Counted from the stretch's first letter, positions 11,028 to 52,500 are shown. The stretch: 64,000 bases of DNA from Mobula birostris (GCF_030028105.1 NC_092374.1:186156638-186220637), one strand, 5' to 3'. Notes: generated from the sequence alone by a model not told the origin. Program-made: numbers and translations.

Positions 11028-11096
11028 ATGGTGGAGTGTAACAAGATTACGGGGCATCGCGCTGGTGTGTACTTTCCTCCGGAGTGTCTCAGGGCG
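11028..11096 (+). CDS. Possible first coding exon of the Ig-receptor gene (MVECNKITGHRAGVYFPPECLRA), or a 5' UTR exon with an upstream ATG
   Basis: ATG in strong Kozak context (gtcaacATGG) and consensus donor GCG|gtgagt at 11097. It ends in phase 0 and is in frame with the next exon and its ATG at 11512. Lies in a CpG-rich region. Confidence 0.45.
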
Positions 11097-11490
11097 GTGA
11101 GTCGACGGATGGTCCGCTTATCGGCTTGCTCCGCCGGGGGAGGTGTGAATGCTCAGCTCCTCAGTCCAATACGCAGCTGTCACTGCCGCCAGACTCTGAT
11201 CACCACCCATTGGTCCTCTCAAGCACCACCTTCACTCATCTACCGACTACTCCCCCGTCGGTCTGTTTTTAACTCTTCAAACGGGTACCAGGATTATTGC
11301 CCCGTCCTGATGAAGGGTCTCACTGTTGATTCATGTCCATAAGATGCGGCCTGACCTGCAGAGTTCCTCCAGCATTTTGACTGTGTTGTTAATGGTAGGT
11401 TGTTGAGACAGGAATCTCACCCGCTCCCTGTACCCGAGACTGGATGAGCATCAGTACGGAAAACTCCGTGAACTCAACGTCCCTCCGCAG

Positions 11491-11578
11491 TTTAACACAT
11501 CCCGCAGCACCATGCGGTCCACAGAGGCTCCTGGAGTGTGCGGTCTCGCTATTTTCGTTTACATCTCAACAATTACCG
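11491..11578 (+). CDS. Leader/signal-peptide exon (MRSTEAPGVCGLAIFVYISTIT-A)
   Basis: Acceptor ccctccgcag| at 11490, cagcaccATG at 11512, hydrophobic core GLAIFVYISTIT, and a phase-1 donor ACCG|gtgaga that matches the phase-1 V exon. Confidence 0.8.
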
Positions 11579-12217
11579 GTGAGATTCTCCGCGGTTAATG
11601 ATCGGAATTCTGTGTTGTAGTGGTTATTTAGGATGCAAGCATGTTAGACGAATTATTTGGGATAACCCGTCGGTTCCACATGCCGTTCAGGAAAGTTGAT
11701 CTGTAACTGTCTCAGTTCAGACCTCGGGTTCGTGTAAACAACATGACGACTGAGCGGCCGACCTGGAAAGCCGGCAGCGACTCGATGGGCCGATCTATTC
11801 CTGTGCTGTCTGATTCGAATCAGTATCGCTGCTGGCCGAACCAGAACTCTTCGAGATCACTTAAGGCCGATTTTCCCCGGGTTGGTCCCGGTCTTGTTCC
11901 ACAACCTCCCAACCCCGGCGCTGTCCACCAGTCAGTGTATAACGGTGACGGGAAGGTACAGAACTACCGCTCTGGTTGGTCCTTCCCGGGGACAGGTGGG
12001 TTGTAGCAGTGGATGCCCCGGATAGGGGGTGATGTTTGGAGAACTCAGTGGCTCTCAGATCTCTCATTACACCCAAGAACTTCGCGCGGTGGTGAGATGC
12101 GTGAAACACGGACAAAGTTTATTTCAGTTAGTTACATTCTGCAGCCCCAACAATACTTGTGTTTACTGTTTAAATGTCGCCACTTTATATTATAACAATC
12201 CCCATCTCCACCTTTAG

Positions 12218-12601
12218 CCGCTCTAACACTGAGGGTGCATCAGGACAGAGTGAATGGAACCGCCGGCCAGTCCGTGCTCCTGCCCGCCTTTTACGCAGTC
12301 CCGGACCCACACGGTTATCTGCGGATCACATGGACCAGAGCGGGGAATGTTCTTGCAAAATACACCTGCTTCTTGTTCCAACACTGCGAATCCGGTCAAA
12401 GTCACCCCTTCATCTTTGTTTCCAGCGACTTTAAACACAGGATGCAGCTTTTCCCGGAGAACGCTTCGCTGTTACTGAGAGATTTACGGATCAACGACAG
12501 CGGAATTTATGAATTGGCCATTAGCCACTCTATGGGAACGAGAAAACGCAACTTGACCTTGGTGGTTCGGCCTGACGCTGGGAATGGAAAAGAGCTCGTG
12601 G
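12218..12601 (+). CDS. Ig V-set domain exon, CD2/SLAM/CEACAM/HEPACAM-like N domain
   Basis: Acceptor cctttag| and donor GTGG|gtaggt; 384 nt, phase 1-1. Motifs include VNGTAGQSVLLP (A'/B strands), ITW (C-strand Trp), RMQLFPENASLLLRDLRINDSGIYEL (D-E-F strands with DxGxY) and NLTLVV (G strand). Four N-glycosylation sequons (NGT, NAS, NDS, NLT). Confidence 0.9.
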
Positions 12602-13744
12602 GTAGGTTCCACATTGGGCGCATTGTCGGGGCAAGCGCCAGTTTTTGTGGGCGATCTCTCCGTAACCTTTGATGCCCTTCTATCAAGAATCTGTCAACCT
12701 CCGCTTTGAAAAAAACACCCACTGACTTGGCCTCCACCGCCGTCTGTGGCAATGAATTCTACATATTCACTACTCTAACTAAAGAAATTTCTCCTAATTT
12801 CTGTTCTAAATGAACATCCCTCCATTCTGAGGCCATGCCCCCGGTTCTAGTCCCCTCTATAGGGAACATCCTATCCACGTCCTCTCTATCTAAGCCTTTC
12901 AATATTCAGCAGGTTTCAGTAAGACTCCCCAAGTTCCTGCGAGTACAGGGCCCAGAGCCACCCAAACGCTGCTCATACGCGGGGTCACTCTCGTGAACCT
13001 CCTCTGCACCCTCTCCAGTGGCAGCATACCCTTGCTTAGACATGGGGCCCACGACTGCTCGCAGTACTCCAAGTGCGGGCTGAACAAGGCCTAGTAAAAC
13101 CTCAGTTTATCTGTTGAATCCCGCTGGACTTGCCGTCGACTACATTTATGATTTACTTTCCGAAGATTAGATGCGCATTTAGTTCACTATTTCGTAGCCT
13201 ACATCCACACAACAACAATCTCCAATTAGACAGTTGTTCCATTCAGAGAGAGTTCCGGTCCCCTCTCAGTCAGAGATCACAGGTGGATGCAGGCGTGTCC
13301 AGAGTGGGCCGCCTGCGTTGACGGAAAAAACCGAGTTACGCTTCGGGTCAGATCAGGGAACTGTTGTGGATAAAATAGGGTTTCAGGTGCAGGGAGGAAG
13401 GTGGGGGAGAGGGCCGAGTTCTGTGGTGCGGCGGAAGGCTGAAAGATGTCAAAAGACGGTGTGAACATTTCCGGCCATTATACTGTAGTTTCGTTTTCTG
13501 CTAATTTAGGTTGTTTCTCTGTCACTCTCGAATGTGTTGAGGGCACTGATTCTGCCAGGGATCCAGATAAATCCGGCAGATGAAGTGTAATGCTGCGTAT
13601 GCGATATCAAAAGGCGGGCTGTCACCTTACTGGGGAGAGGCTGAAAGTAAGAATGAGGATTATATTTATTATCACTGATGTCTGACATGCCAGAACGTGA
13701 ATGAGAATTGGAATATATAGCCAATTGCCATTCACATTTCGCCA

Positions 13745-14200
13745 TGTCGGACTATGGCCCCTTCTACAGTCACGATGAAGCCACTCTCAGGTTGGAAGAC
13801 CAACACTGCATTCCGTCGAGGCGGCCTCCAGCCTGACACCGTGAACATTGATTTCTCCCCTCTCCCCATTCTCGCTCTCCTCTCACCTCTTCTCTTCTCC
13901 TTAACTTCATATCACTTTCTCTGTTGTCCCTGTTCCTTCCTTTTCTTTCCATGGCCCACTCTCCTCACCTATCAGATTCCTTCTTCTACAGCCTTTTCCC
14001 TCTTCCACCTATCATCTCCTGGCTTCTTACCTCATCCACACATCCCATCCCAACCACCTTCCCCCTCACCTGCCAGCTTGCACTTCCCTCCCCCACCTTA
14101 GTATTCTGTCTTCTTACACTTTCCTTCCCAGTCCTGAAAGCCCAGAAGGTCGACTGTATTTTCCCCTCTATAGATGTTGCCTGAAGGGCTGAGTTCCTGT
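13745..14200 (+). mobile_element. Penelope 3' fragment with degenerate pseudo-LTR
   Basis: Similar to 5350-5800 (gatgaagccactctcaggttggaagaccaacac..., CT-rich tract, cagtcctgaa...gtcgactgta). Confidence 0.8.
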
Positions 14201-14832
14201 CCTGGTGGGCACTGACAAATGACTGAACCCAGGTGCAGAGGAACGACAGACTCCCCTGTCAAGACAGAAACAGGAGTTTATTCATAGGCATTCCAACAGA
14301 ACATCGATGATTTGACCAAGCGACACTGCGAGATGATTCATCCTCAAAATACAAGGACCCCACAATAAGTGCTAATTGGGAGTCCACTTTAAATCATCCA
14401 CAGTACATGGAAAGCCTATGCCAATCAAAATAAACTTGACAAGATTACACAGAAAGCACAAGGGATTCAAGACTTCAGATAAAAACAACAATGAATGAAT
14501 ACAGTTACAGAGGTCTGTGGGGTTCAGGACAGTTCCTCCATCATTTTCTAAGTGTTGCTTAAGATCAGGGAGGTTTCGTTACTGCGGCCAAGGTGTTGAT
14601 GAGGTCACACCTAGGGTACTGTCCACAGATCTGGTCGCCTTACCCAAAACAGGTTTTAGTACCATTGGTGGGAATACAGAGGAGATCCACGAGGCTAACT
14701 CTGGGGGTGAGATGCTAGTCCTGTCACGATGAATATATACAGTAAATGGCAGGGCCTTTACATTCTGATGTACAGAGATATCTTGAGATGCAAGTCCCTA
14801 GCTCCCTGAGAGTAGTAACACAAATAAAGAAG

Positions 14833-14982
14833 ATGTACATGCCGACATTAGCTGGGGTGCTGAGTATAAATGTCAGGAAGTCATGTACATGCCAACGTTA
14901 GTTGGGGGGCAGAGTATAAATGTCAGGAAGTCATGTACGTACCAACATTAGTTGGGGGGCAGAGTATAAATGTCAGGAAGTC
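14833..14982 (+). repeat. Three tandem copies of a 50-bp unit inside a CR1 fragment
   Basis: Unit atgtacatgccgacattagctggggtgctgagtataaatgtcaggaagtc repeated at 14833, 14883 and 14933. Confidence 0.9.
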
Positions 14983-15209
14983 GTGTTGCGGTGGTGTAAG
15001 ACTTTGGTTCGGCCACAGTTGGAGCATTGTCTGCAGCTCTGGTCACCACATTGTGGGAAGGAAGTGGAGGCTTTGGGGAGGGTGCAGAGCACGTTCACAG
15101 ATTGGTTCATGGGTTAGAGCATTAGCGATAAGTACAGGTTGGATAATCGTGGATTGTTTCTTTAGAGCAATGTTGGGGGTTGGGTGGGGGGGAAGTTAGG
15201 TGCACAATA

Positions 15210-15700
15210 AGGCAGGGAAATTTGTCCTACTGTATCCATCATCAGTGGACTCCACCACACAAGCCATGCTCTCTTCCCACTGCTGCCATCAGGAAGAAGG
15301 TACAGGAGCCTCAGGTCTCACAGTACCAAGTTCAGGAACAGTTATTACCTCTCAACCATCAGGCTCTTGAAGCAGAGGGGGTTAACTTCACTGCCCCATC
15401 ACTGAACTGTTCCCACACCTATGTGCTCACTATCAATGAGTTTTCATCTCACGTTCTTGATACTTATTGCTTATTATTATTTATTATTATTATTTCTTTT
15501 TTCTTTTGTGTTTGCAGTTTGTCGTCTTTTGCACATGGGCTGTTTTTCTGCCCTCTTGGGGGCTGTCTTTCATTGATTCTGTTACGTTTCTTGGATTTAC
15601 TGAGTATGCCCACAAGAAAATGAATCTCAGGGTTCTATATGCTGACATACAGTGATTGTAATTTGATAAAAAATATACTTTGAACTTTGAATCCATTATT
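15210..15700 (+). mobile_element. Rex1/Babar LINE 3' end (similar fragments near 18000, 19400, 20450, 22040, 26100, 27310, 58860 and 63170)
   Basis: Encodes the HALFSLLPSGRRYRSL...RFRNSYYPSTIRLL-type C-terminus, followed by the shared 3' UTR. Confidence 0.8.
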
Positions 15701-16769
15701 AGGGAGTCCCATCACCCAGGACATGCTCTCTTCTCATTGCTACCATTAGGGAGGAGAGCCTGAAGGTACACACTCAATGATTCAGGAATAGCTTCTTCCC
15801 CCATCAGATTTCTGAATATGTAATTTAAAAAAATATATGTACTGAAATTTACAGCTTCTATTATTATGTATTACAATGTACTGCTGTCGCTGAACAACCA
15901 ACTTCACAATATATGCCAGTGATATTGAACCTGATTCTGATTTGCACTTGTTTTACCAACTTCATCAGAGTCACACGTACTATCGTTTCTCTCGCCTCAG
16001 TACGTAAGGAGCATCCTTTATATTTAACTGGACACTAACTGATTGGTTGAACGCAAGTGTTATTTTATTAATTGCATACGATGCAGATACTTCCCCTCCG
16101 GTTGATTGAGGAGTTCTGATGAAGTGTTAAGGGATGCACATCGATGATGTGTAACTGTAGAAATGCATGGGAGCTGCTCTGTAGAGTCTGGTTAATATAT
16201 AACCATCACCATGTGCAGTGAGATTTTAATTCATCACAGCACTCTAGCACTCGTAAAAGATTTTTGAGCATTTCTCAAGCCCCTCCTACATTTGCCTTTC
16301 CTTGTCACTGTCTTGACCCTCCTTTGGTAAGAACTACAATGCCCCCTGTGCTCAGGTTCACTGTTTCTTTGGCAATGTCGTCAGTCTCATCTTTGTCCAT
16401 TTTAAAATGTGGCACAACTGTAATCTCTCCCCAGAGTCAGGACAGCCAGCTTTCTAAATCAGACTAACTAGCTGCTGTGTGAAGAGTGTACAGTAGCACA
16501 GGAACCGCAGGTACTGAGATGGTGTGCTAACTCCCATCTGACTAATAGCAACAAGAAACAATAATGGGGTTGTCTTTCAGTGCTCAGGCAGTGGCAAATA
16601 CCTGGGGAGTTACAAAAGTGATATCAGAGAAAGACACAGGTTTAATGTATATAATATGATATTTAATTTATTTATTGGGATAAATAAAATATTGTATTAG
16701 ATACACTAAATCTGTCTCTCCCTCTGACATAAACCTCCATAAATGCTGCATGGGGTAGACCCTTTGAGC

Positions 16770-16972
16770 CAAGCTGCCCAGCAATCCCCCAATTTAATCC
16801 GAGCCATTTAACCTACCAACTGGTACCTTTGGACTGTGGGAGGAAACCAGAGCATCTGGAGGAAACCCACGTGGTCTTGGGGAGAACATACAAACTCCTT
16901 ATAGGTAACAGTGGGAATTGAACCTGGGACACCTGTACCATAAAGCGTTGTGCTAACAACTACGCTACTGTG
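16770..16972 (-). mobile_element. tRNA-derived V-SINE (HE1-like); further copies at about 27870-28070(-), 42590-42790(+), 48890-49160(+), 49700-49935(-), 51640-51950(-) and 63880-64000(-)
   Basis: tRNA-like head (tagcgtagttgttagc...ggttcaattccc) and V-domain core gtgggtttcctcc...ggtttcctcccacagtccaaag. Confidence 0.8.
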
Positions 16973-17547
16973 TTTAATATGATAGAATGGGAGGTTAACT
17001 AAACTTGGGTTGTTTCCTCAGGGGCGGAGGAGGCCAAGGGGAAACTTGATAGACTTTTATGAGGTTGCGAACAGCGAGATAGCTTAAACAGCTGGTAACT
17101 TTATCCCAGGGTCGAAATGTCTAATGCAAGGGCATGCACTTGAGGTAAGAGGGATAAAGTTCTATAGAGATATGCAGGGCAAGTTTTCTTTACACAGGAT
17201 TATGGTGAAGGCAGATTGTGGTGATTAAGAGGCTCATAGGAGGGGTACATGAATGTGCAGAAAATGGGGGGATATGAACCTTAAGGGATTAGATGTAATT
17301 AGCTGAATTACTTAAAGCACAACTTTGTGGGCCAAAGGACCTGTTCCTGTACTGTACTGTTCAATGTTGTTAGTAACAAGCGTGTAAGTAATTCAATAGT
17401 TTACTCATGTTTCTGTCTGTAATATTGAAGTCTAAATTCAAAGTGGTAATGCGATTGAAACTCCAATTTTTCACACCTTCCTTGAATCAATATGTTGGAA
17501 TGACAGTCGTTATTGATGAAGTGTCTAATGTATTATTTGTTTCACAG

Positions 17548-17644
17548 GTACAGACAAGAAACAAATGCCAGCCATAGCTAACATTCGATATGTTAGCCTT
17601 GTTCTTATTTTTATCTTCTTGGGTTTTACTGTGAAAACACAGAG
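17548..17644 (+). CDS. Stalk plus transmembrane exon (GTDKKQMPAIANIRYVSLVLIFIFLGFTVKTQR)
   Basis: Acceptor ttatttgtttcacag| and donor CAGAG|gtaagc. Phase 1 in matches the V exon; phase 2 out. Open in the required frame, with a hydrophobic stretch followed by basic KTQR. Confidence 0.75.
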
Positions 17645-18653
17645 GTAAGCAGTGATCGTGTGACACTCTCTCAATGGCCTTCAGTACATTCTGAATAGAG
17701 GGACGTCCATTTAGATAGAGATGAGAAGGAACTTCTTTAGCCTGGGAGTGGTGAACCTGTGAAATTTCTTGCCGCAGGTAGCTGAGGAGGCCAAGTCATT
17801 GGGTATATTTAAGGTATAGGATGATAGATGCCTGATTAGGCAGGGCATGAAGGAATACGGGGAGAAGACAAGAGACTGGGGCTGAGAGAGAAATGGATCA
17901 GCCATGGTAAAATGGCCGAGCAGACTCTATGAGCCAAACGGCCTAATTCTGCTCCTATATCTAAATGGTCTTATGGTCTTCTACAGCTGTGTGGCAGATT
18001 GACTGGTTGTATCACGGTCTGGTATGGAAACACCAATGCCCTTGTACGGAAAAACCTAAAAAAATAGTGGGTACAGCCCAGTCCATCATGAGTAAAATCC
18101 TCTTCCACCATTGAACACACCTACACAGAGCATTGTCGCAGGAAAGCAGCACCCATCATCAAAGACCCCCACCTTGCAGCAGCCTCAGGAGCTGTACCAC
18201 CAGCTTCAGGAACAGTTATTACCCCTCAGCCATCAGGCTAATGAGCCAGAGGGGATAACTTCACTCGCCCCCCCCACACAACTGGACTCACTTTTAAGGA
18301 CTTTTCATCTGATGTCCATGATTGTATTGCTTATTTATTTGTTGTTATTATTTCCCTTTTTCCCTTTCTTTTTGTATCTTCACAGTTTATTTTTGCACGG
18401 TGGTTGCAATCCCTCCTTTTGGGTGTTGCCATTGATTCCCTCTGTTGTGCTTCTTGTATTTACTGTGAATGGCCACAAGAAAAGCAATCTATATGGTGAC
18501 ATGTACTGTATGTGCTTCGATAATACATTTACTCTGAGCTTTGAATTGCCTACAGGCAACATAAATTAAGTAATGGAAGTAATTTCAATGTCGTGCATTA
18601 CTCAGCCATAAGATGTGTCAACTTCAAACTTTTTATCTGTTATCATCATTCAG

Positions 18654-18705
18654 AAGTTATAAAGAGCAGAACAATCCCCTCTCTCTTCTGGTTAGCACTG
18701 TCTAG
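18654..18705 (+). CDS. Alternative candidate short terminal exon (RSYKEQNNPLSLLVSTV*)
   Basis: Acceptor ttttatctgttatcatcattcag|, open in phase 2, followed by non-repetitive sequence. No independent support. Confidence 0.2.
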
Positions 18706-20740
18706 CTGTGGCTTCAGTAACTGCATCACACATAGACCAGTAATTGCTTGTAATGGTGACAGTGGAACAGTGAGCTTGACCCAGAGCTAGACAGTGAAAA
18801 TAAGCAGGAATAAGAAACTAGAGACCACAGTGTTCGAGACCTTTCCTTCCATGTATGGCTGCTTGTGTGTAAGGGTTTTGATTTTGGACACCGTGCATTG
18901 TGGGTTTGATAACTGATCAATGATAACTGCTTTTTGCATAGTAGGGGAATTAAGGGTTATGAGGAAAAGGCAAGGTAAGTGGAGAGGAGTCCATGAGCAG
19001 ATCAGCCATGATCTTATTGAGTGGTGGAGCAGGCTTGACAGGCCAGATGGCCGACTCCTGCTCCTATTCCTTACGTTCTTATCAATGTCAGTGCTTTCCT
19101 CATTAGGTTGTGGGCGATCTCAGCAGGAGGCAGAGGAGGGAAATGCCCCTCAAGCAGACTGGGTAAGTTAAGACATTTGTATTGAAATTGGTTTATTATT
19201 GCACCATGTACCAGGGTACAGTGAAAAGCCTCTCTTGCATACTGTTGATACTTTACGCAGTGCGTTGAGGAAGAACAATGTAAAACTATAGCAGAATGCA
19301 GAACAAAGTGTAACAACTACAGAGAAAGTGCAGAGCAGGTAAACGATAGGGGCGATAGGGTGCAAGATCATAACGAACTAGAGTGTGAGGCATACTCCAT
19401 CTTGTGGTACGAAAGATCTGTTCGAGATTCCATTAACAGTGAGATTGCTGTTTTTTTTTGAGCTTGGTGGCCCACGCTTTCAGCTTTTGTCTCTCCTGCC
19501 TGATGGTCAGGTGGGAGGGGTGGGAGAGCACGTCGGGGTGGGTGAGGTCTTTGATAATGCTGGTTGTTTTACTGAGGCAGAGGCTATTGAGGGGAGGCTG
19601 GTTTCCGTGACACACTGAGCTGTGTCTACAACTCTCTGCCACTTCTGTGGTCATGTGCAGAGCAGCTGCCGAACCAGGTAGGATGCTTCCTATAAGAATC
19701 GGCAAGAGTTGACTTTGTGGATGGGAAGTGAATTGCTTAAACTGCTTTTTTTTTGCAGTTTGGATTTGAAATTCCCAAACCTGCTGTTCTCCTGGCATTG
19801 CCGAACCCCTGGGAATAAGCAATTCCCTCTCCTCCCAGGATATCAGCTGTGGAGTCCCAGCACCCACGTTGACTGAGTTGACCCTGTGTTGAGATGGAGA
19901 GCTGTCAGTGTGAGGCTGAACTGACCACAGTGCCTGCTTGTATATTTAACACTGACCATAAAACACAAAACCGTACAGTGCACGAACAGGCCCTCTAGCT
20001 CACAATGTTGTGCTGAACTGACAGAGCTAATGTCACCATCCCTTCTGCCCGGACGTGCACCATATCCCTCCATTCTCTGCATTAAGAATCTCTTTAACAC
20101 CTCTGTCCTACTTTCCTTCTGTGACAGAGCATTTCAGGCACCCATCACTCTCTGTGTAACAAAATCTACCCCGCACATCTCTGTAAATAAATACCATTCT
20201 AGTGTTAGGCATTCTGACCCAGGAGAAAGATACTGGCTCACAGACAAGAGAAAATCTGCAGATGCTGGGGAATCCAAGCAACACACACAAAATGCTGGAG
20301 CAACTCAGCAGGCCAGGCAGCATCTATGGAAAAGAGTACGGTCGATGTTTCAGGCCGGGACCCTCCAGCAGGACTCCTGATGAAGGGTCTTAGCCTGAAA
20401 TGTCGACTATACTCTTTTCCAAAGATACTGGCTGGCCATTCTTTTTATACCTATCGTAAGGTTATATGAGAGGAGGACTCCTTTGGAGTCTGTGGAGATT
20501 CAGCATGACATCCAAACTTAGATAAACTTCTATAGATGTGTACTGGAAAGTATATTGACTGGAGCATGGCTTGATATGGAAACACCAATGCCCTTGAATG
20601 GAAAATCCTACTAAAGGTAGTGAATTTGGCCAGTATACTACAGGTAAAGCCCTCCCGACCATTGAACACACCTACATTCATCATCAGAGATCCCCACCAC
20701 CCAGGTCATGGTCTCTTCTTGCTGCTCCCATCATGTAGAG

Positions 20741-21383
20741 TAGTGGTCGCCAACCTTTTCAAGCCCAAGATCCCCTACCTTGGCCTTAGTGAAAGGCAAG
20801 ATCCACCTACTAATCGTTTAGACATACGCATGCGCACTGGGCAGAAAAGACCCAAAGTAAGACCCCGCAACCCGGAAACAACCTCTCTTTACAAACAGCT
20901 TTCTGTAGCGGGAGTATTGTTATATAACTATTATCTGAATCAGTATTACTTATTTTATAATGCTCACATTACAACACCTTTAATTCTATGTTTCACTATT
21001 TAATTTTATTTCAACATGAAAAATAAAGGAATAAAAATTGACTGTTGCACTCAGTGTGATGACTGGGGCTGAATACTTTCTGCTAGTTCCCTGAAATTTG
21101 GCTCATAACTACAGACAGCCAGTCTGAGACAGTCTGTGAGGTGTCTGTCAGTAAAACAGCTCCTGTACTCAGTGTTGTAATATGAGCATTACAAAGATAA
21201 GTTAATGCCAATTAGGATAATGGTTATATAGCAATACTCCCGCTACAGAAAGCTGTTTGTAAAGAGAGGTTGTTTCCAGGTCGTGGGGTTTTACTTCTGG
21301 TCTTTTCTGCCCGGTGCGCATTTTTCATTTTTTTTCAGGATCTACTGGGAAAGTCTCAAAGATCGACTGGTTGGCAACCACTA
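20741..21383. mobile_element. Non-autonomous hAT-type DNA transposon
   Basis: TIRs tagtggtcgccaacc / ggttggcaaccacta and an 8-bp TSD (atgtagag at 20733-20740, acgtagag at 21384-21391). Interrupts a Rex1 3' end. Confidence 0.85.
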
Positions 21384-24300
21384 ACGTAGAGGGTACACGA
21401 GCCTCAGGGCTCACACCACCATGTTCAAGAACTGTTCCTACCCTTCAACCATCAGGGATAACAGTACTCACTTGCCCCATCATTGAACTGTTCCTACAAC
21501 AAGGATCTCACTTTAATCTCATCATCTCGTCATTTATCGCTATTTATGTATATTTGCATTTGCACAGTTTGTTGCCTTCTGCACTCTGGTTGATCTTTTA
21601 TTAATGCTGTTATAGTTGCTATTCTATAGATCTGCTGAGTATTCCCACAGGAAAATGTATCTTAGGATTGTATATGGTGACATATAGTACTTTGATAATA
21701 AAATTTACTTTCTAAACTTCTATCAGGCTTCCCCTCAGCCTTTGCTGCTCCTGTGAGAATAACCTAAATTTGTCCAGCTTTGTCCTCAGAGCACATGCTC
21801 TCTAATCCAGGTGGCACGTTGGCTGGAAATGGGTGGGGTGGATCACAGGGGCGGAAAGGTCCGGGTGAAGGGAGATTAGGGAGGGAGGCGGCCCCAGAGG
21901 GAAAGAACCCTCATTGGCAGAAACAGAATGGGCAGATGGGGAGGGAGTGTCTTCCATCACCTTTACAACACCCCTGTGCCCACTTAAAGTTCACAGTAAA
22001 TTTACTAACAAAGTATGTAAATGCCACATGCTACCCTAAGATTCATTTCTTTGTGGGCGTTCACAGCTGAACAAAGAAATAATATAGAATCGATGAAAGA
22101 CTACACACAAAGACTGACAAACAACCAATCTGCAAGACAAATTGTGCAAATACAAAAAATAAATAAATAACATTGAGAACGTGAGTTGTAAAGTCCTTGA
22201 AAGTGAGTCCATAGGTTGTAGAAGCGGTTGAACGTTGAGATAAGTGAAGTTATCCACGTCAGTTCAGGAGCCTGGTGGTTGAGTCTGTGCTGAACCTGGT
22301 GGACTGAGATCTCAGGCTCCTATACCTCCCTCCCGCTGGCAGCAGTGAGAAGAGAGCAGGGCATGATTGTGGGGTTGTTGATGATAGATGCTGCTTTCTT
22401 GTTGCGGTGTGCTCCTTGTAGATGTGCTCAATGTGGGGGAAAGTTTTGCCTGTGATCACACTTTCTGATCACACTTTGCACAATGTGATCAGGAACCTAG
22501 ATTATTGTAACCAAATTGAAATAAACCCCAATTGTTTGGTGACAATTGATTTCTTTGCCTCTCCTACAATGAAATAGTGGCACCAAGGCTCTGGAGAGAC
22601 GAGATCTGACCTTTAGCTACAGCTTATGTTCACTCAAAGCCTGGTGCTGTGTACAGCAGAGATAGCAACACCTCAAAGCATAGAAGTGACAGAGGGAAGC
22701 ATGGGTGAATTGAAGTGGCTGAGTGCGCTTCACTGCAGAACCTGAATAGACAGGTTTAACCACAACGTTTCAACGTCTCTCGTTAGTAATCTATTTTTAA
22801 GATCTGACACTCTGGGACACATTTTTTTTTATAAAATAGAACAAATCTGTTCCTGGTCACTTTCAACACAAGTTCAGCAAATGATTATATCCCCTGCAAA
22901 TTTAGCTCAGTCACAAACAGCATGGCTAATTTAACCACAGATATCTAAATGGTTCATGAGCCTATTAACATGATCTCACTATTCCTTTTTTGCATTATTT
23001 GCTTAACTTTGAAAATCATGGTCATTGCCACAAAACAGCAAACATCACAATGTATGTCACTGGTAATAAACCTGGTTTTGATTCTGGTTCAGGAAGAGCC
23101 AAGAATTGGGACTGATAGGGTGCAATTTCCATCACCAGAAACTGCAGGGAAGACTATCTTGAACCAGACCCCACACGTTCCATTAGAACGACACTGCACT
23201 AATTTGAACTGAACTGAATGAAACTGAGCATTCCTGGACTGTTTCAAAGACTGTGCAGTTTGATGTTTAATATCCTCTGTGTTATCCGCTCATTTTTGCC
23301 GTTTGCTTGATTTGTTCTTTTCTTTTGCCCATTGGGTGTTTGATGTTTTCTTTGAATGGGTTCCATGGTGTTTCTTCGTTTCGTGGCTGCCTGTGGGAGG
23401 ATGCATCTCAGGGTTGTGTACCTCATACATACTTCGATAATACATGTACTTTTGAAATTTTGACTTTGAACGTAGGTAGAACAATGGTCAGTACGGGACA
23501 GGAACAAGCTCTTCAGCCCGTGATGGCTGTGCCAAACATGATACCACATTACACCATTCCCTCCTGCCTGCACATGATCGATATCCTCCCATTCTCGACA
23601 CATTAGTGTGTCCACCTTCAATCTCTGGAACAGCACCATCTGATCTGCTTCCATCACTACCCCTGGCAGCATGTTCCAGGCACTCACCACTCTGTATGTA
23701 AACAAAAATACTTAGCCCACACATCGTCTTTAAACTTTTCTGCTCTCATTTTAAAACTCTGCTCTCCAGTGTGCATCATTTCTATAATGGGAAATAGATT
23801 GTGGCTGTCTATGCTGTCTATGCCTCTTATAATTTTATAAACCTCCAACCAGTCTCCTGTCAGCCTCTGACACTCCCTGTTCATTCAACCTCTTCTTACA
23901 GGTCATACCCTTTAACCAAAGCAGCATCCTGGGAAATGGCTTCTACACCCTTTCCACAGGCTCCACACTCTTCCTGTAATGAGATGACCAGAACTGCACA
24001 CAATACTCTAAGAAGAACACAGGCAAAGTTTATATAACTGCATCATTCCTTCCTGATTCCTTTACTCTGTATGCCTAGTGATGAAGGCAACCATGCCCCA
24101 CAGCTTTTTACCACTCTGCAAGTTGCATTGCCACCTTCAAGGAGGTTTGGATTGATTTAATCATCGACAAATGAAAGCCTAGTAGTTCACAGAATGTTCA
24201 GTAAAGGAATAAATGTTGTGTTCACTCACACGGCTTAACCCCCAGGATATTACCCATGTTAATCAGTTCATACAAAATGATCAAAGCCAGGGGAACAGTA

Positions 24301-25395
24301 TCAAAATTTCACTCCTGACTGAAGGTTTCAACTTTTCAAAGGTTTCAAGGGTACATTTCATGTCAGAGAAATGTATACAATATACATCCTGAAATTCATT
24401 TACTTTGCAGACATCCATGAAAACCGAAGAGTGCCCCAAAGAATGAATGAAAGTTAAATGTTAGAAACCCAAAGCCTCCCCCCCCAGCTCCCCCCATCCA
24501 TACATAAGCTGCAGCAAAGCAACGACCCTCCTCCCCCAAAGGCAACAAAAGCATCGGCACCTCCACCGAGCACTCAAGCGTGCAGCAAAGCATCAATAAA
24601 ATACAGACTTGCAGTATCCCAAAGACTACTCGTTCACCCAGTAATTTGACATACCACAGGCTCTCTCTCTCCCTAATAAGGGAAAAAGAGGTGTCCCCAT
24701 ATTCACAGCGAGAGGGGAGACATAACAAACAACTCGCTGATTAACAATGTCAAAAGTCTGTTGGTGTTGCTTTTTCCGAGCTCTGTGCCCAAAGAACTCG
24801 GGGCTCTGAACACGCAGCCAGCAGCCAGCTCGCTGCTTACGATCTTCCGTTTCCCATGATACACCAGTTTCTGCAGCGACACCGACCTCGCGTCCTCTCG
24901 CCTCCAGAGCCACAAAATCCTGGAACCCTGAAGGTGCACTAGTTCTGTAGGCCCTGTCCTTGGCATATGGAATAGCAGCCAGTCGTGAGACCCCAAGAGT
25001 GGATCCCATTCCCACAAGGAACCGAAGTCAGAATCAGAATCAGGTTTATTATCACTGGCATGTGTCATGAAATTTGTTAACTTAGCAGCAGCAGTTCAAT
25101 GCAATACATAATCTAGAAGAAGAGGGAAATAAAATAAAATAATAATAATAATTATTATTATTATTATTTATTATTTACTTATTCCCGGTAACTCCAGTTC
25201 AGGGTCTTCAAAAGAACCTTGAAAGGGAAAAATAAAGATATTAAAGATAGACAATGAGCTGTTTCCAAGGATGCAAGCAAAGCAGTCACCGTTATCTGTC
25301 AACTTTAAAGTCAAAGTAAATATACAAACAAAGTAACACACATCAAAGTTGCTGGTGAACGCAGCAGGCCAGGCAGCATCTCTAGGAAGAGGTAC

Positions 25396-25430
25396 AGTCG
25401 ACGTTTCAGGCTGAGACCCTTCGTCAGGAT
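25396..25430 (-). ncRNA. Type I minimal hammerhead ribozyme: core intact, stem I shortened
   Basis: - strand reads tc-CTGACGA-agggtctcagcct-GAAAC-GTC-gactg. Confidence 0.7.
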
Positions 25431-26374
25431 GTGTGTTGCTTGAATTTCCAGCATCTGCAGAATTCCTGTTGTTTGCGATATAAACAAAGTACATGTGGTT
25501 TGGTTGGTTGGCATCCATCTCTCTCAAAGGACAATGGGTGATGACTATCATCATTACAAGCCTGGTTGGAAGGTATGGAGATCCTGAGATACCCAGTCAT
25601 CAAGATCCCCCTCTCAGCTTCACCCGTGTAGTCCAAAGGAAAGCTTATGAAGCAATACGTTTGGGACCAGATTGGCTGCAGGAGCTGCTGGAAGGATCTT
25701 CAGTGATGTCCAGCTGCCACAGGGCTCCACTCCAGATTTGCTGTCCGAGTTTACTCCCATAGCCTTCGTCTCTCCCAAGGTTGCCCACAAGGCAGTGGGG
25801 CTACCTACCCATAGCTGGGATCCACACACCGGTGCAGGGGCCAGACCTCCTCCCCGTCCTCTGTAGTTCAGCCTGAGTCCGAAAGGAGTTCAGTTTCTGT
25901 GTGTCGCCAGCGAGGAGGCACAGCATGAGGCTTGCTGTTGGAGAGGCAGGGAGAAACTTACACATGCAGCTCTCCTTTTCACAAGACTGCTAGTCAGTGG
26001 TGGAAACTGAAAGCGAGAGCGACAAGCACTATCCACTGCACTACCACACTAGATGCATCACAACAACCATTTTGACATCAAAATGCATATATGACACCAT
26101 ATATTACATTGAAAATAATTTTCTCACAGGCAATTACAGGAAAAATAAAAAAGTACAATGGAATTTATGAAAAACTATGTATAAGCAAAGACTGATAATC
26201 AGCCAATGTTTAAAAGATGACAGATCGCGCAAATAAAAATATCAAATAAATAAATAATATTGAGAACATCAGTCATAGTGTCCTTTGACGTGAGTCCATT
26301 GAAGAACAGGTTCAGAGATGAGGTCAGTGAAGTTATCCACACTGGTTCAGGAGCCTGATGGTTGTCAGGTAATA

Positions 26375-27287
26375 CAATGGATTCTGATTAATTGGGCCAT
26401 CGGTTAACCAGGGCAGCTACTTTCTTGGGATAACTCTTAAAGAACAAAACTAAATCAAGAAAATAGCCGGGATTTCCTTCATTTATTTGGGACACTCTGC
26501 TGCTTAAGTGGCTCAGGAGACTGTTGCTGAACAATTCCTAATTTGTATCAGTCACATGCATATCGCCCGCCATTAGACACTGCACTGTGCTTAGAGAAAA
26601 CCATTTTAAAATAGCGTCACTTGCATGTGTCAGTGTTCAAAAACGTTGGTTTCTGACAGGGATAGCTGCTGAGTAGTAAGCAGTAAGATAATTCAGAACT
26701 GTTTTGCTCACTGCTGTTTTAAGCTTTCAAGCTCAAGGGTGCCAGAAATGGCCAGGAGTGAAAATGAAATGATTTCACTACTTCAACAAGTAATGAAGAA
26801 TTTGAAGGCTTCGACAATCATCTTGAATGGTGCAATGAAAATAAAGATTTGAAGGATGCAATCGTCAAAAGCATCATTTGGAGGCAGTCCACTATCTATA
26901 CTAGTGTCTGCGGTGATTTTGTTCAATTACAGTCAATCAAAATAACTTTGCAAATGAATTCCTCTGTCATTAACTATTAAGAACTAATACACAGTTTTAC
27001 AACACACATCAAAGTTGCTGTAGAGGCAGTCCATTGTCTACACTAGGTGTCTGCACTCATTTTGTTCATTTACAGTCAATCAAAAGAACACAGCATACTG
27101 GATGAATTCCTCTGTCGATAACTACTAGGCACTAATGCAGAGTCTTATATACTGTAGTAGGTTTTGTAATGTTCTAATTTGTTCTGTATTTCATTTAAAT
27201 ACAAAATTTCACTTGAACGGAAGTGAGCCGCTTAATTGGGCCAAAATGTACTGGTCCTGATGTGTCCCAATTAACCGTAATGCACTG
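26375..27287. mobile_element. Non-autonomous Tc1/mariner (Tigger/pogo-like) element
   Basis: Imperfect 22-bp TIRs caatggattctgattaattggg / cccaattaaccgtaatgcactg flanked by TA. Interrupts a Rex1 3' end. Confidence 0.75.
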
Positions 27288-28329
27288 TAACTGCTTCTGT
27301 ACCTGCTGCCTGATGTAGTAGCGAGAAGTGAACATGGCACTTGATGATGTGGATCTTTGACGATGGGTGCTGCTTTCTTGTGCCCGCACTCCGTGTAGGT
27401 GTGCTCAATGTGGAAAGGGCCGTGCCTGTGATGAACTGGACTGTAGCCACCTCTTCCTATCGACTTTCCTATTCCTGTGGCATTTTGCAACCAGTTAGGA
27501 TACTCTCAACTGGTCACCTATAAAAGTTTGTCAAAGTGAAACTTTTCTCAAGAGTGACCAAATGTCCAACGAATTGAGGACTACCATGTGGGTCTAATGG
27601 GCAGTGACTTCAGCAGCCTGACAACGAACTGGTCTACCGGTCTCTGAAGGGCGGATGGGATAGGGGTTGCTCAGTCTAGACCTATGTTCAATCGGAGTTA
27701 GTCTCTTTCAATGATCACAACACCAGGGTGAAGAATAATGCCACAAAGACCTCTTCATTTCTCCCATTTTTAAAGAGAAAGGTTAGATGTATCTGTCACC
27801 TGTACATCAAAACATTGAAACACTTGGTGAAAGATGTGTTAGGGAACAGCCCACAGGTGTCACTAAACTTCTGGCACCAACAAAACATACACACAACTCT
27901 CTAACCACAACTCGTATGTCTTTCTAATGTAGGAGGAAACCAGAGCACCCAGAGGAAGTACATGCATTCTCGTGGAGAATATGCAAACTCCTCACATGCA
28001 GTGGTGGGTACTGAACTCTGATTTTACAGATTTTACGTTGTGCTAACTGCTCGGCTGCCATGGCGTCCCGTTGCCTCTCCCACTCTCAGCCCATTTCTTG
28101 GGATTTAATTCCCTCTGACCACCTTCGGCAATGGGTAACATCCTTCTTCAGGAAACAGCAGCTTCCCTTCCACGTTAACTACAGCTCTCTTTCTCTTTCC
28201 AAGGTGCTGCCTGACACAGAACATCCAACAGTAGAGTCTCTTGTGTCCCTTCAGTTCACAATGTTGTGCTGGCCTTATAATGAACCTAACCCTTCTCCAC
28301 TTTTCTATTGTCTATTTTCTCCTTGTTAG

Positions 28330-28565
28330 CACGTGGCCAAGTGGTTAATGCATTCATTTAGTGATCTGAAGGTCGCTAGTTCGAGCCTTAGCTGAGGCAA
28401 CGTGTTGTGTCCTTAAGCAAGGCACTTAACCACACATTGCTCTGTGACGACACCAGTGCCAATCTGTATGGATCCTAATGCCCTTCCCTTGGACAACATC
28501 GGTGTCATGGAGAGGGGAGACTTGCAGCATGCGCAACTGTCAGTCTTCCATACAACCTAGCCCAG
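28330..28565 (+). mobile_element. tRNA-derived SINE with a CORE-like domain
   Basis: A box tggccaagtggtt, B box agttcgagcc, followed by gtccttaagcaaggcacttaacc. Confidence 0.65.
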
Positions 28566-28841
28566 GCTATATCGGTCTCTACCACCACCCCTGGCAGGGA
28601 TTTCCACACACCCACCACTCTTTATGTAAAAAAAAATTACCCCTGTCTTGCTGATTTTCCGGAACATTCTTTGAGATTTCCGGCACCTGAATTTCCTTGC
28701 TGTTAGGTAGGCAAGTGGATAATGTTCAACCCACACTGTGGGGTGTAAGTATGAAATATGATAATTCATTTCAAAGTGCAACTGAGAGAGATCAAATGCA
28801 TTTCATTTTAACCATCTCTTGTGACCTGTTTTGTCTTAAAG

Positions 28842-28908
28842 TGGCTCCAGAATTCATCGAAGCTCAACCCAGCTGTGGAATTTGCTGAGAGGAAGTCACG
28901 GGAGCTGA
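28842..28908 (+). CDS. Probable cytoplasmic-tail exon ((SGS)RIHRSSTQLWNLLRGSHGS*)
   Basis: Two acceptors 9 nt apart (ttgtcttaaag| at 28841, gctccag| at 28850). Phase-2 frame is compatible with the TM exon; stop TGA at 28906-28908. Homologous to the exon-like segment at 49571 (-), which supports exon status. Confidence 0.5.
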
Positions 28909-29799
28909 CAGGAAGGACAATGCGGATTACAGATAACACAATACAGACTGTGGTCGGTTTCAGATAGTGAAGAGACGATCGGGAGCTCATGAGGACATTG
29001 TTTATGCAGAAGCAGAAGGTATGGAACAAGCATGTTGAATACAACCATTGGAATATGTACCATCAGAACTGGAGCTACCATACCCAGTGACTTCGGATTG
29101 CCCTTTCAGTTCCGTGTTCCCATGAGATTCCCGGGTTCTTTGAATCCAGTGTGTGTTGCTCTGGGGTAGAACATTCCAAAGGCCAGCACTCTCCAAGGGA
29201 AGAAACTTCTCTACATCGCAACTCCTGGTAATCGAGGCACTACCCTGAGACTACACCCCAGAATGACGAAGCTCTCCCCACGTCCAGCTCAGGTTGCTGG
29301 CTGCGATCACTTCTCCTGATGCTTGGAGGATACAGAAATACACCTGACTCCAGGACTGAGATATTGTGCCCGTGGACACCATCTCTGAGACAATGACTAA
29401 ACACACCCTGGTTCACCAGGTGTGCCCTCACCAAAGCTCCTCGGGAGATTCACCAAGGTCCCCAGCCTCCATCCTCTCACCGTCTTGGACTTGTGGCCAT
29501 TGAAGAGCCGGTAGACCGAGCCCCATCCGTACAGGAATGTCGTAGCATGGTGTTCAGTCACCTGCTGTGGAAGAATGAGGGTCATGACGGGGTGGGGGCT
29601 TCAATGAAATCCGGTAGTTTCTACTGAGTAGTTTCTACTGCTACAGGTGAAGAGACACTGCCACTTATCTTGGTGTGTCTCCCGGCTCTGCACGATGGAG
29701 CTTGTCCTGATCTCCTGGGCAATGCTTATACGGTCAGTATCTCTCTGCTGCTGATGCACACAATGCAAGTGACTTTGCTTGAGCTGAGATCACCGCCTG

Positions 29800-30545
29800 T
29801 GAACAACACACACAAAATGCTGGAGGAACTCAGTCCTTCCAGGCGAGGCAACACTTCACCAGCAGATTCGTTGGGTCGTCTATTGTAGCCGGTGCTCCCG
29901 AAGTGGCCTCCTCTACATTGGTGAGTCCTGATGTAGACTGGGGGACCCACTTTGTCGAGGACCTTCACTCCCTCTGCATAAAGCAGGATTTCCCTAATTC
30001 CAGTCCCTTTTCCCATTCTGACATGGCCTGTGCCATGATGGGTTCACTCTCTGTTTGGAGAAGCAAGTCCGCATATTCCAGCTGGGCAGCCTCCAACCAG
30101 ATAACATGGACACCAATTTCTCTAACCTGATAACTTTTCCCCGTCCCCTTCCCTCTTCCATCCTCCACTCAGGCTCCTTTCTCACCTCTCCTCACCTATC
30201 GTCTCCGACCTGTGCTCCTCCTCCTTCCCTTTCTCTACTCTCCTGTCCCATGAGATTGCGTCTTCTTCAGCCCGTTATGTTTTCTACCTATCACATCCCA
30301 CCTTCCCTCCCCCACCCACCTACCTTCCTGCTCACCGGCTTCACCTGCCACCTGCCAGCGTGTACACCTTGCCCTCTCCCCAGCTTCTCATTCCGGCTCC
30401 TTCCCTCTTCCTTTCCAGTCCTGATGAAGGGTTTCAGCCCTTGAATAAACACATTGGCTGTTTATTCATTTTCATAAATGCTGCCTGACTTGCTGCACTC
30501 TTCCAGTATTCTGTGTGTGTTGCTCTGGGTATCCAGCATCTGCAG
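29800..30545 (+). mobile_element. Penelope GIY-YIG and 3' fragment with truncated hammerhead
   Basis: RQHFT..VVYC..CSRSGLLYIGES, FQLGSLQPDNMDTNF*, then cagtcCTGATGAaggg. Confidence 0.8.
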
Positions 30546-49396: not shown

Positions 49397-49571
49397 CAAA
49401 CCACGGTCCAACAGAAATGGGGAAATCGATATCTTGTGCTTATTTCCCAAACCAAATCTTATCATATTCCGCGTTCTCTTCAGGATTTTCCACCTTCTTT
49501 CTGTTCGTTCCTGTAATGCCCTGTGATGCCCTCTCTGTATACCACACAGCCGGGCAGTTTGCCGATGAATT
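49397..49571 (-). CDS. Exon-like segment homologous to the receptor tail exon, in inverted orientation (paralog or orphan exon)
   Basis: Acceptor ttgatttcatctcag| and donor TTG|gtaagg. About 44/66 ungapped nucleotide identity (by eye) to 28851-28916. Phase-2 frame is open throughout; frame 0 ends ENAEYDKIWFGK*. AATAAA on the - strand at 49237-49242. Confidence 0.5.
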
Positions 49572-52500
49572 CTGAGATGAAATCAAATAAGCCTCATTAC
49601 AATTTGAACTCCCAATACGCCAAAGTGTTTCACAGGACAGTAAGGAAGGAATACAAAGCGATTGATGTGTGAAAACTTGCTTATTTATTTCATTTAGAGA
49701 CACAACGCAGGATGGTCCTTCTGGCCCAAAAAGCCTCATCACCCAGCAACCTAATCGCAGGACAATTCACATTGACCAATTAACTAGTTTGTCTTTGAAT
49801 GGTGGGAGGAAACCTGAGCACCCAGAGGAGCCGATGCAGTTCACAGGGAAAGCATACAAACTCCTTACAGGTGGCACCAAATTGAACTCCAAATTCTGGA
49901 ATGACCCAAGCTGTAATCACGTCGCGCTAACTGCTACGATGTGCTTAAAGAAATAGGTTTAGAAGCTTCTTAACGGAGGAAAATAGAACACCATGGCACA
50001 GCACAGACCATTCAGCTTACAATGTTGTGCTGAGGTAATTTAACCTTTCCCTCACATATATCCCTCCATTTTTCTCTCAGAAAGAGGTAGACAATTTTCG
50101 ACAGAAACCCAGAGTTTAGCCCTGGCCAGCAGAAGGGCAATTGTCAGTCCATTAAAATAGTGATTTCAGAAGGAGGCCGGGATTGGAAACCCCATAGCTG
50201 GAGAAGGTTGAAGAGTAAGGAGAGCAGAAGCAATCGATAAATCTGTAAACTGGATGGACTACTTAGCATTGACTGAGCCACCGATATCAGACATGATATA
50301 ACTGCTCTCCAACCGGTCAACCATGAACAGTCCTCCACTAAAATCTGGCACTGGGGTCTGAATTGGAAGAGCTGTCCCACTGCCTAGTCAGAGAACAGAA
50401 CACCCTGGCTGAGCCAACCTGACATTGTGCCACCACAGTCCCCACATATCCCGTGACCCACCAGAAGATGGCAGCAGATTACTGTACAGGTGGGTCCTCA
50501 AGTGTTGAATTGGGACCTACGAAGTCCCAGCGTATCAGCAAGAAAACCTAAACACGAGGAATTCTGCAGATGCTGGAAATTCAAGCAACACACATCAAAG
50601 TTGCTGGTGAACGCAGCAGGCGACGAAGGGTCTCGGCCCGAAACGTCGACTGTACCTCTTCCTAGAGATGCTGCCTGGCCTGCTGCATTCACCAGCAAAT
50701 TTGATGTGTGTTGCTTCAGCAAGAAAACCTTCCTGCTTGCCACCCGCTATCCTCCCTCAGCAGATAATTCAGCCTCCTCCTAGCTGGAAGAAACACCAAC
50801 ACTAGTAAGGACACCAGACGTATGCTTCCACATGGTCCTCTGGTACTGTGACCGTGGCCCTTTCAGTTTGCTCAGTTACAGTTTGTGATTCTGAATTGTC
50901 AAGTTTGCGGGACTTGCCAGGGAAGGTAGAGTGATACTACTCTCCCATGGTATGACGTCTGGAACCAGGTGTCAATCTTTTTCAAGAAATGTTGACTACT
51001 TATCACTTTCCATAGACGCTGCTTGACCTGATAAGTTCCGCCATTAAAGGATTGGCCATTCAATACTGAGTTAAGATTTCTTCAAAGTGTGGCAAAGTCT
51101 GGAAACTCTCCACCCAAAGGGGCCTTGACATTACATTTCGGTTAGAGATCGATAGATTTTTGAACATTAAGGGAATGGTGGCTATGGGTTTCACGCCTGA
51201 AAATGGCACTGATCAGCCGTGAATGTGAAGACTGACGATTTATTGACCCTGATGGGGTTCCCCTCCCGATAACTGAGCTGCTGCATGTTACTAACGTCCT
51301 TAGGCGAGGGCTGACAATTATATTTATTTATTTGTTTGTTTAGGGCAGAGATGAGGAGGAGCTGCTTTTCTCAGATAGTGGTGAATCTGTGGAATTCTCT
51401 GCCCAATGAAGCAGTGGGGGCTACCTCAGTAAATATATTTAGGACAAGGTTGGATAGATTTTTGCATAGTAGGGGAATTCAGGGTTATGGGGATAAGGCA
51501 GGTAGGTGGAGATGAGTCCATGGTCAGATCAGAAATGATCTTACTGAATGGCGGAGCAGGCTCAATGGGCCAGATGGCCTGCTCCTGCTCCTATTTCTTA
51601 CGTTCTTATGTATAATGTTTATTTATTTTATTTAGAAATACAACACAAAACAGGCCCTTCCAGTCCAACAAACTGCAGCTCCTAGCAACCCACCTATCAC
51701 AGGACAATTTACAATGACCAACTGACCTACTAACTGATATGTCTATGGAATGTGGGAGGAAATCAGAGGACCCAGAGGAAACCCACACAGTCATGGCTAG
51801 AGTGTACAAACTCCTTACAAGGGCCACTGGAATTGAATTCTGAACTCAGAAAAGCCTGAACGTACACACTCCTGAGAGAGGCCACCAGAATTGAACGCCA
51901 AACCCCCAAAAGTCCAAAATGATTAGCATTGTGCTAACTGCTACACTACAAGTATGTCCATGACTGAATGAGCAAAGCCTTTATCTCACCACCCACACCA
52001 TCATGGCTGCTTTAGATCAGTTCAAGGTTGCTAACCGTCTTGAGAACATGGAATACCTCTGCCAAGTTCACAGGCAGTAACTTTGCAGAGTGTTTTATGG
52101 GCTTTGTTATCCATACCTCCATACCTCCTCCTTCCCTTCTCCCACCCCCCCAGCGTGGTTGCAGATGCCCTCCCCGATACTCCGCAAAGACAAAGACAAA
52201 CGTGGGGAGTTGCACTCAGAAGCCATGGCATATACAGTTTAATGACAATGCAACGGCAGTGCCAGGAAATGTTGAGTAGAGGGATCTGGAAGTACACGTC
52301 CATAATTCCTTGAAAGTGGCATCACAGGTTGATAGGGTGTTGAAGGGAGATTCTGGCACATGGGCCTTCATAAATCGATGTCCTGGTATAGGGATATCAT
52401 GCTGAAATTGTATAAGATGTTGGCTAAGTCTAATTTGGAGTATTATGTGAAGTTTTAGTCACCATCCTACAGGAAAAGTATCAATGAGTGAAAGAGTGCA

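Follow-up and report, generated by a model that had tools for sequence, protein, structure and literature searches.

Results and Discussion

A 64,000-nucleotide (nt) stretch of the genome of the manta ray Mobula birostris (GCF_030028105.1 NC_092374.1:186156638-186220637) was analysed; it is referred to below as the window, and positions are counted from its first letter. Between positions 11,028 and 28,908, on the plus strand, it contains a real, spliced gene, whose structure is established through to the transmembrane (TM) exon. The product is a small type I membrane glycoprotein made up of a split leader, one immunoglobulin (Ig) V-type domain without the disulfide, a short stalk, a TM segment containing an arginine and a cytoplasmic tail of 22–37 residues. 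By sequence comparison the gene is a member of a large, annotated and unnamed elasmobranch multigene family, and it is probably an activating type within this unstudied shark-and-ray family of paired immune-type receptors. A conserved charged TM segment, decayed tails and an ectodomain kept similar to that of clustered long-tailed relatives together make up the classic anatomy of an activating paired receptor. We put at about one half the probability that the arginine, Arg164, docks an ITAM adaptor (ITAM, immunoreceptor tyrosine-based activation motif) and that the receptor is the activating counterpart of its long-tailed relatives.

Structure and transcription of the gene

Exon 1 (11436–11578, its 5′ limit being a minimum) carries 5′ untranslated sequence and most of the leader. 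Translation is taken to start at Met 11512, the first in-frame ATG past a stop near 11404, in the context caccATGc, giving 22 residues and one further nucleotide before the donor ACCG/gtgag; the remainder of the leader lies at the start of exon 2, and the leader is 56% identical to residues 1–25 of the family member P0008. Exon 2 (12218–12601) supplies the V-set domain, on the evidence of Pfam, an AlphaFold2 model and transcript contigs, and exon 3 (17548–17644; 97 nt, ending in phase 2) encodes the short stalk and the TM helix, residues 159–179. GT-AG borders are present at all joins of 11512–11578, 12218–12601 and 17548–17644 and then 28842 or 28851, and an open reading frame runs through the leader, the V exon of 127 codons and the TM exon, whose splice sites are intact. 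The initial annotation had proposed phase-compatible leader, V, TM and tail exons encoding a single-V receptor of about 201–204 residues from Met 11512. Splicing of these exons reproduces that protein, a type I membrane protein with its leader, V-set domain and TM segment, at 204 residues with acceptor 28842 and 201 with 28851, and the length becomes 213–216 residues if a further exon, described below, is included. No second V or TM exon was found by tblastn across the window, the search including a TM exon of the neutral class (type A, below), and a gene model with an alternative TM exon is thereby excluded. An Rfam scan of the entire window gave no match at the gathering score.

Evidence for transcription comes from Logan contigs of one public sequencing run, X1, which we take to be an RNA run. 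Two of its contigs are 98–99% identical to the exons and lack the introns. The first, of 343 nt, joins 12500–12600 directly to 17547–17641 and continues for 147 nt that are unlike 17645–17699; the second, of 345 nt, covers 12217–12418, and its other 143 nt, upstream of the acceptor at 12218, are unlike intron 1. The junction 12601/17548 proposed initially is therefore seen directly, and the acceptor 12218 is a splice boundary, whereas the junction proposed from 17644 to 28842/28851 was not observed in the X1 contigs. The junction 11578/12218 is inferred from the length of the X1 contig and from paralogue models. The X1 transcript departs from the genome at or just before the donor at 17644, the alignment ending at 17641, and read-through of this donor (AGG TAA, giving 183 residues) is excluded for that transcript because the contig leaves the genome there.

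The contigs differ from the window at 12284, 12290, 12295 and 12562. The first three changes fall within 12 nt and replace Pro by Leu, Phe by Ser and Ala by Thr, the last two toward the family consensus; such clustered differences could reflect gene conversion, allelic variation or the presence of a paralogue of nearly the same sequence.

The V domain

The V exon is recognised as an Ig V-set domain by Pfam (E=1e-8), and an AlphaFold2 model built with a 16-sequence family alignment is a β-sandwich with a mean predicted local distance difference test score (pLDDT) of 86. At the positions of the two canonical Ig cysteines the B strand has Pro and the F strand has Leu; the domain carries four N-x-S/T sites, and Cys73 and Cys79 lie in the C′–C″ region. 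A serine that is near-invariant in the family is Phe in the window gene, although the resulting A-F-Y is also present in domain 1 of P0006, another family member of the arginine-containing class.

The initial annotation had described the ectodomain as of CD2/SLAM/CEACAM type. The single V domain stands, but the named proteins closest to it in fold are VSTM5, HEPACAM2, CXADR and HEPACAM, not CD2 or SLAM; these are the top Foldseek matches, with 20–25% identity, and for VSTM5, HEPACAM and HEPACAM2 the TM-scores, normalised by the query, are 0.69–0.74. A phmmer search of the domain against the PDB returns CEA (E=6e-4) and CEACAM6 (E=7e-4), with an LRIG1 Ig domain scoring better and PVR similarly. 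The ratio of nonsynonymous to synonymous substitution rates (dN/dS) for the V exon against Rhinoraja is 0.34, at a dS of about 1.1, which is saturated.

An unnamed receptor family

An exhaustive HMMER search returned 427 relatives, so the architecture, which the initial annotation had regarded as unusual, is not a one-off. The closest, with V domains 53–71% identical to that of the window gene, come from Hemitrygon, Hypanus, Pristis, Rhinoraja, Scyliorhinus, Stegostoma, Heptranchias and both Mobula species, and they stand in the databases as ‘uncharacterized’, ‘HEPACAM family member 2-like’, ‘hepatocyte cell adhesion molecule-like’ or ‘A33 antigen-like’. Single species carry multiple copies, the genes lie in clusters, and some members have tandem V domains. 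More distant relatives, with 35–40% identity, occur in birds, turtles, an alligator and frogs. In the literature searched, no paper was found on this receptor family, on LOC771657 or on shark adaptors for charged TM segments.

Short-tailed relatives in frogs (P0083, P0120 and P0183) and birds (P0001, P0002 and P0004) also have an arginine at or just inside the outer TM edge, reading ...AVRGTCAAIF... in the frogs and ...TRIPCC... in the birds, the latter having Gln and His inside the TM segment as well. These forms may represent the same activating design outside the elasmobranchs. Two gull models (P0199 and P0201, Rissa tridactyla) fuse a family member to TMLHE, the trimethyllysine dioxygenase, which hints that the bird cluster lies beside TMLHE, not in the CEACAM locus.

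The transmembrane segment and its two classes

The best 21-residue hydropathy window in the protein comprises residues 159–179, AIANIRYVSLVLIFIFLGFTV, and the TM peptide reads as first quoted. Arg164, encoded by CGA at 17586–17588, occupies the sixth position, and in the predicted helix it is placed in the outer third, about six residues from the outer face.

Alignment shows that the TM exons of the family are homologous throughout and fall into two classes. In type A the segment is neutral, reading I/L-P-P (S-A in one Pristis protein), and is followed by long tails with tyrosine motifs, among them the canonical ITIMs (immunoreceptor tyrosine-based inhibitory motifs) VEYDKI, VLYTEI, VDYAQI and VEYATV; family members with canonical ITIMs or immunoreceptor tyrosine-based switch motifs (ITSMs) were found. 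In type B the same position reads (I/A/L/V)-R-Y. The type B set comprises the window gene together with P0015, P0016, P0019, P0022, P0159, P0158 and P0006, from Rhinoraja, Hemitrygon, Scyliorhinus, Stegostoma, Heptranchias and Mobula, and the arginine is kept in all eight sequences, from seven species. These span hexanchiform, carcharhiniform and orectolobiform sharks as well as rajiform and myliobatiform rays.

The V domains do not follow this division. In a tree the sequences cluster by lineage and not by TM class, as in paired receptors; the window gene joins a Rhinoraja type B gene with support of 81/85, and type A V domains are 70–71% identical to its own.

As judged from these sequences, the ITIM-bearing tail has decayed independently in the arginine-class lineages. 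In Heptranchias the tyrosine has become Phe (TEFAHI, where type A has VDYAQI or VEYDKI), in Stegostoma it has become His (TEHARI), and in Hemitrygon there is a frameshift inside the first cytoplasmic exon. In Rhinoraja longicauda (L001:13996-14244) homology to the last exon begins within about 15 nt of the TM donor AGAG/gtaagc and the annotated protein reads through; the introns and the cytoplasmic exon that once lay between seem to have been lost in a genomic deletion that fused the TM exon to the last exon. The corresponding change in the Mobula window gene is a shortened TM exon: it has 97 nt and a phase-2 end (CAGAG/gt), compared with 99 nt in the other arginine-class genes, whose TM exons end in phase 1 (CACAGAG/gtaagc in Rhinoraja, KTQRG in Scyliorhinus).

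The cytoplasmic tail

The tail as first modelled was incomplete, because a candidate exon 4 of 56 nt at 19107–19162 had been overlooked. It is flanked by the splice sites cattag/GTTGTG and GACTGG/gtaagt and is matched in tblastn by the tails of P0016, P0013, P0006, P0008 and P0155, with E-values down to 9e-4, making it the counterpart of the first cytoplasmic exon of the family, (G/V)CKxxQ...DW. The candidate terminal coding exon at 28851–28908, with an alternative acceptor at 28842, is likewise homologous to the last exon of the family (P0155, E=0.004; P0015, E=8e-4, by tblastn). When exon 4 is skipped the tail is that given initially, KTQRIHRSSTQLWNLLRGSHGS, ending at a stop at 28906–28908; when it is included the tail is KTQRLWAISAGGRGGKCPSSRLEFIEAQPSCGIC, in a protein of 213 residues, and the stop lies at 28886–28888. 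The nearest AATAAA is at 30444.

Run X1 contains 4 of 13 sampled words of 28842–29010, about what would be expected of a contig reaching some 88 nt into the terminal exon. Part of this region is thus present in the same run, and the share of words leans slightly, though not decisively, toward inclusion of exon 4.

Because the TM exon of the window gene ends in phase 2, the ancestral frame of the tail is unreachable and both cytoplasmic exons are read out of frame; inspection of the sequence by hand found no AG acceptor that would allow the terminal exon to be entered in its ancestral N-S-S frame straight from the TM exon. None of six splice or read-through models contains an ITIM, ITSM or ITAM: tyrosine is missing altogether from five of them, and the sixth ends in a lone terminal Tyr. 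The absence of a tyrosine motif from the tail, a feature noted initially, holds in every model, those with the additional exon among them.

Proposed function and alternative explanations

The proposal that the gene encodes a candidate activating receptor draws on the conservation of the Arg-Tyr TM segment in seven species, on the decayed tails and on long-tailed neighbours with near-identical ectodomains; the choice of the γ chain of Fc receptors (FcR-gamma) as its adaptor is less certain. A buried Arg164 would find its partner in an ITAM adaptor dimer, of the CD3-zeta/FcR-gamma or DAP12 type, at an acidic residue in the TM segment of that dimer. The window protein, binding through its closely related V domain the same ligands as the long-tailed members or similar ones, would then act as their activating counterpart. 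In the KIR, LILR and Siglec pairs, adaptors usually dock on a charged TM segment (PMC2832619). An arginine in the upper TM region couples KIR-type receptors to FCER1G, and macaque KIRs with an arginine in the TM segment use FCER1G and not DAP12 (PMC8102735). An arginine in the outer third fits the FcR-gamma/zeta geometry.

A number of observations weigh against this activating role. FcR-gamma was not found in cartilaginous fish in a 2014 survey (PMC4016189), so the arginine would need CD3-zeta, a DAP12-like chain or an undescribed adaptor, or FcR-gamma itself if newer genomes hold one. The N-x(1-2)-R motif to which the initial annotation appealed is conserved only as R-Y, sharks reading A-K-I-R-Y with Lys in place of Asn. 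Only 15 apolar residues follow Arg164 in the predicted TM segment, and the 2-nt loss at the end of the TM exon is a derived state. The terminal motif of the neighbouring long-tailed gene, AEYDKI, is one residue off the ITIM consensus. No annotated protein corresponding to the window gene was found in protein searches whose length ranges covered it, its depth is low (2–3.5) and comes from one run, and the X1 contigs may stem from a sister species, or else from a different allele or a near-identical paralogue.

A first alternative is that the protein is a decoy or tail-less competitor, which would bind a ligand or pathogen of the long-tailed relatives and give no signal, its effect limited to diluting or diverting engagement and its arginine lying without a partner at the membrane interface. 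The motif-less tail of every splice model is consistent with this, and with so short a hydrophobic core after it the arginine could snorkel to the interface instead of being buried. There is also a precedent in turtles, where CEACAM derivatives of inhibitory receptors with a single N domain, a TM anchor and no ITIM have been proposed as decoys (PMC13278318). A decoy, however, would have no reason to keep Arg-Tyr invariant since the divergence of sharks and rays while tails decayed lineage by lineage, and we regard this explanation as unlikely.

That the Mobula copy of this type B receptor gene has instead recently become an unprocessed pseudogene, and is still transcribed, is suggested by its TM exon, 2 nt short of that of every other type B gene examined, and by its two cytoplasmic exons, both out of the ancestral frame; the missing protein annotation, the low depth in X1 and the replacement of the near-invariant Ser by Phe point the same way. 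Yet the leader, V and TM exons remain open with their splice sites intact, the frameshift touches nothing but the tail, which in every type B relative has already lost its function, the A-F-Y of P0006 shows the Phe to be shared, and splicing is correct in the transcript, be it from this gene or from a near-identical copy. Decay of the whole gene seems to us rather improbable on this balance.

Least probable of the explanations considered is a non-immune adhesion or morphogenesis molecule of VSTM5/HEPACAM type making homophilic V-domain contacts: the top Foldseek matches, VSTM5 (a single-V, TM, short-tail protein of 200 residues), HEPACAM2 and HEPACAM, and the automatic NCBI naming of relatives as ‘HEPACAM family member 2-like’ speak for it, but identity is only 22–25%, no better than to CXADR, and a multicopy, clustered family with tandem-V members, ITIM/ITSM members and two TM classes has the signature of immune paired receptors, unlike single-copy adhesion genes.

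Comparison with known receptors

The proposed activating receptor resembles the activating KIRs and KIR2DL4, LILRA, Fc-alpha-RI, NKp46, GPVI and OSCAR in its type I Ig ectodomain, its arginine in the outer third of the TM segment and its short tail without motifs. With the activating KIR/LILRA-type receptors it also shares descent from, and clustering with, ITIM-bearing relatives, accompanied by decay of the tail. It differs from them in its parts, since receptors of KIR/LILRA type have C2 domains of the leukocyte receptor complex and an N-L-I/V-R TM segment, whereas the window gene has one disulfide-less V domain in the style of HEPACAM and CEACAM and an R-Y TM segment.

The likeness to CEACAM extends further. 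In both, the IgV N domain lacks the disulfide and its exon also encodes the end of the leader; P-E-N-A-S-L-L-L in the window gene resembles P-N-A-S-L-L-I in CEACAM; and paired genes lie in opposite orientation. The activating members of CEACAM, however, carry their own ITAM, not a charged TM segment (PMC2110893, PMC2832619). CEACAM genes are reported to be absent from ducks and chicken (PMC13278318), and relatives of the window family are present in these Galloanserae. In Xenopus, lipe and bcl3 flank the ceacam genes on chromosome 7 (PMC5112662), and the frog relatives of the window family appear to be on another chromosome than the ceacam locus; none of the CEACAM-locus genes LIPE, BCL3, ATP1A3 and PAFAH1B3 was found within the window. 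That the gene belongs to CEACAM proper is unlikely, given relatives in Galloanserae, which lack CEACAM, and a gull model fused to TMLHE.

No one-to-one orthology to a known adhesion gene was found for VSTM5, HEPACAM or HEPACAM2. In HEPACAM and HEPACAM2 a C2 domain is added and the tails are long, whereas the window gene has no C2 exon, and membership of either was rejected on the X1 contig, in which the TM exon follows immediately on the V exon. VSTM5 has the single-V, TM, short-tail layout in common with the window gene, but one-to-one orthology was rejected on an identity of 22%, the same as to HEPACAM and CXADR, and on the multicopy state of the family within species. None of the three is multicopy with arginine-TM and ITIM classes, unlike the window family.

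Pathogen pressure has been answered repeatedly by pairs of activating and inhibitory receptors, and next to nothing is known of such pairs in cartilaginous fish, the oldest jawed vertebrates. Our tentative proposal is that the family may be an ancient paired-receptor system that predates the split between sharks and rays, with arginine-TM short forms in frogs and birds and seemingly absent from mammals. Its activating members might have arisen by a switch from Pro-Pro to Arg-Tyr within one TM exon, followed by lineage-specific decay of ITIM-bearing tails. What is new here is the unnamed family, its age and the question of the adaptor; the surprise is moderate, as the kind of mechanism is textbook knowledge and the family is already in the databases as ‘uncharacterized’. 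[quoted passage not shown]

The neighbouring gene and other observations

On the minus strand, at 49440–49571, the window contains the last coding exon of a convergent neighbouring gene of the same family, of the class with a neutral TM segment and a long tail. Its products are two Mobula birostris ‘uncharacterized protein’ isoforms, X2 (P0010) and X3 (P0155), matched at 100% tblastn identity. The exon at 49571–49440 encodes residues 248–290 of P0155 and, in a second frame, residues 267–296 of P0010, the last 30 residues of the latter being encoded at 49572–49483. The frame is set by a 56-nt exon located upstream, beyond the limits of the window. With this exon included, isoform X3 has NSSANCPAVWY...AEYDKIWFGK from the last exon; isoform X2, from which it is skipped, has EFIGKLPG... 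from that same last exon, that is, EFIGKLPGCVVYREGITGHY... The long and short forms of CEACAM1 arise from a 53-bp exon, which this frame-switching exon of the Mobula neighbour resembles.

In Rhinoraja longicauda, the gene upstream of the fused type B gene (L001:1-3169) encodes a multi-Ig protein of 760 residues with I-set and Ig_3 matches and a faint match to Ig_CD22. Within intron 2 of the window gene, the stretches 12700–13100, 13700–14100, 15100–16100 and 16700–17100 are covered at depths in the thousands, at 90–95% identity, in four of four runs, and look like abundant repeats that several organisms contain and may transcribe.

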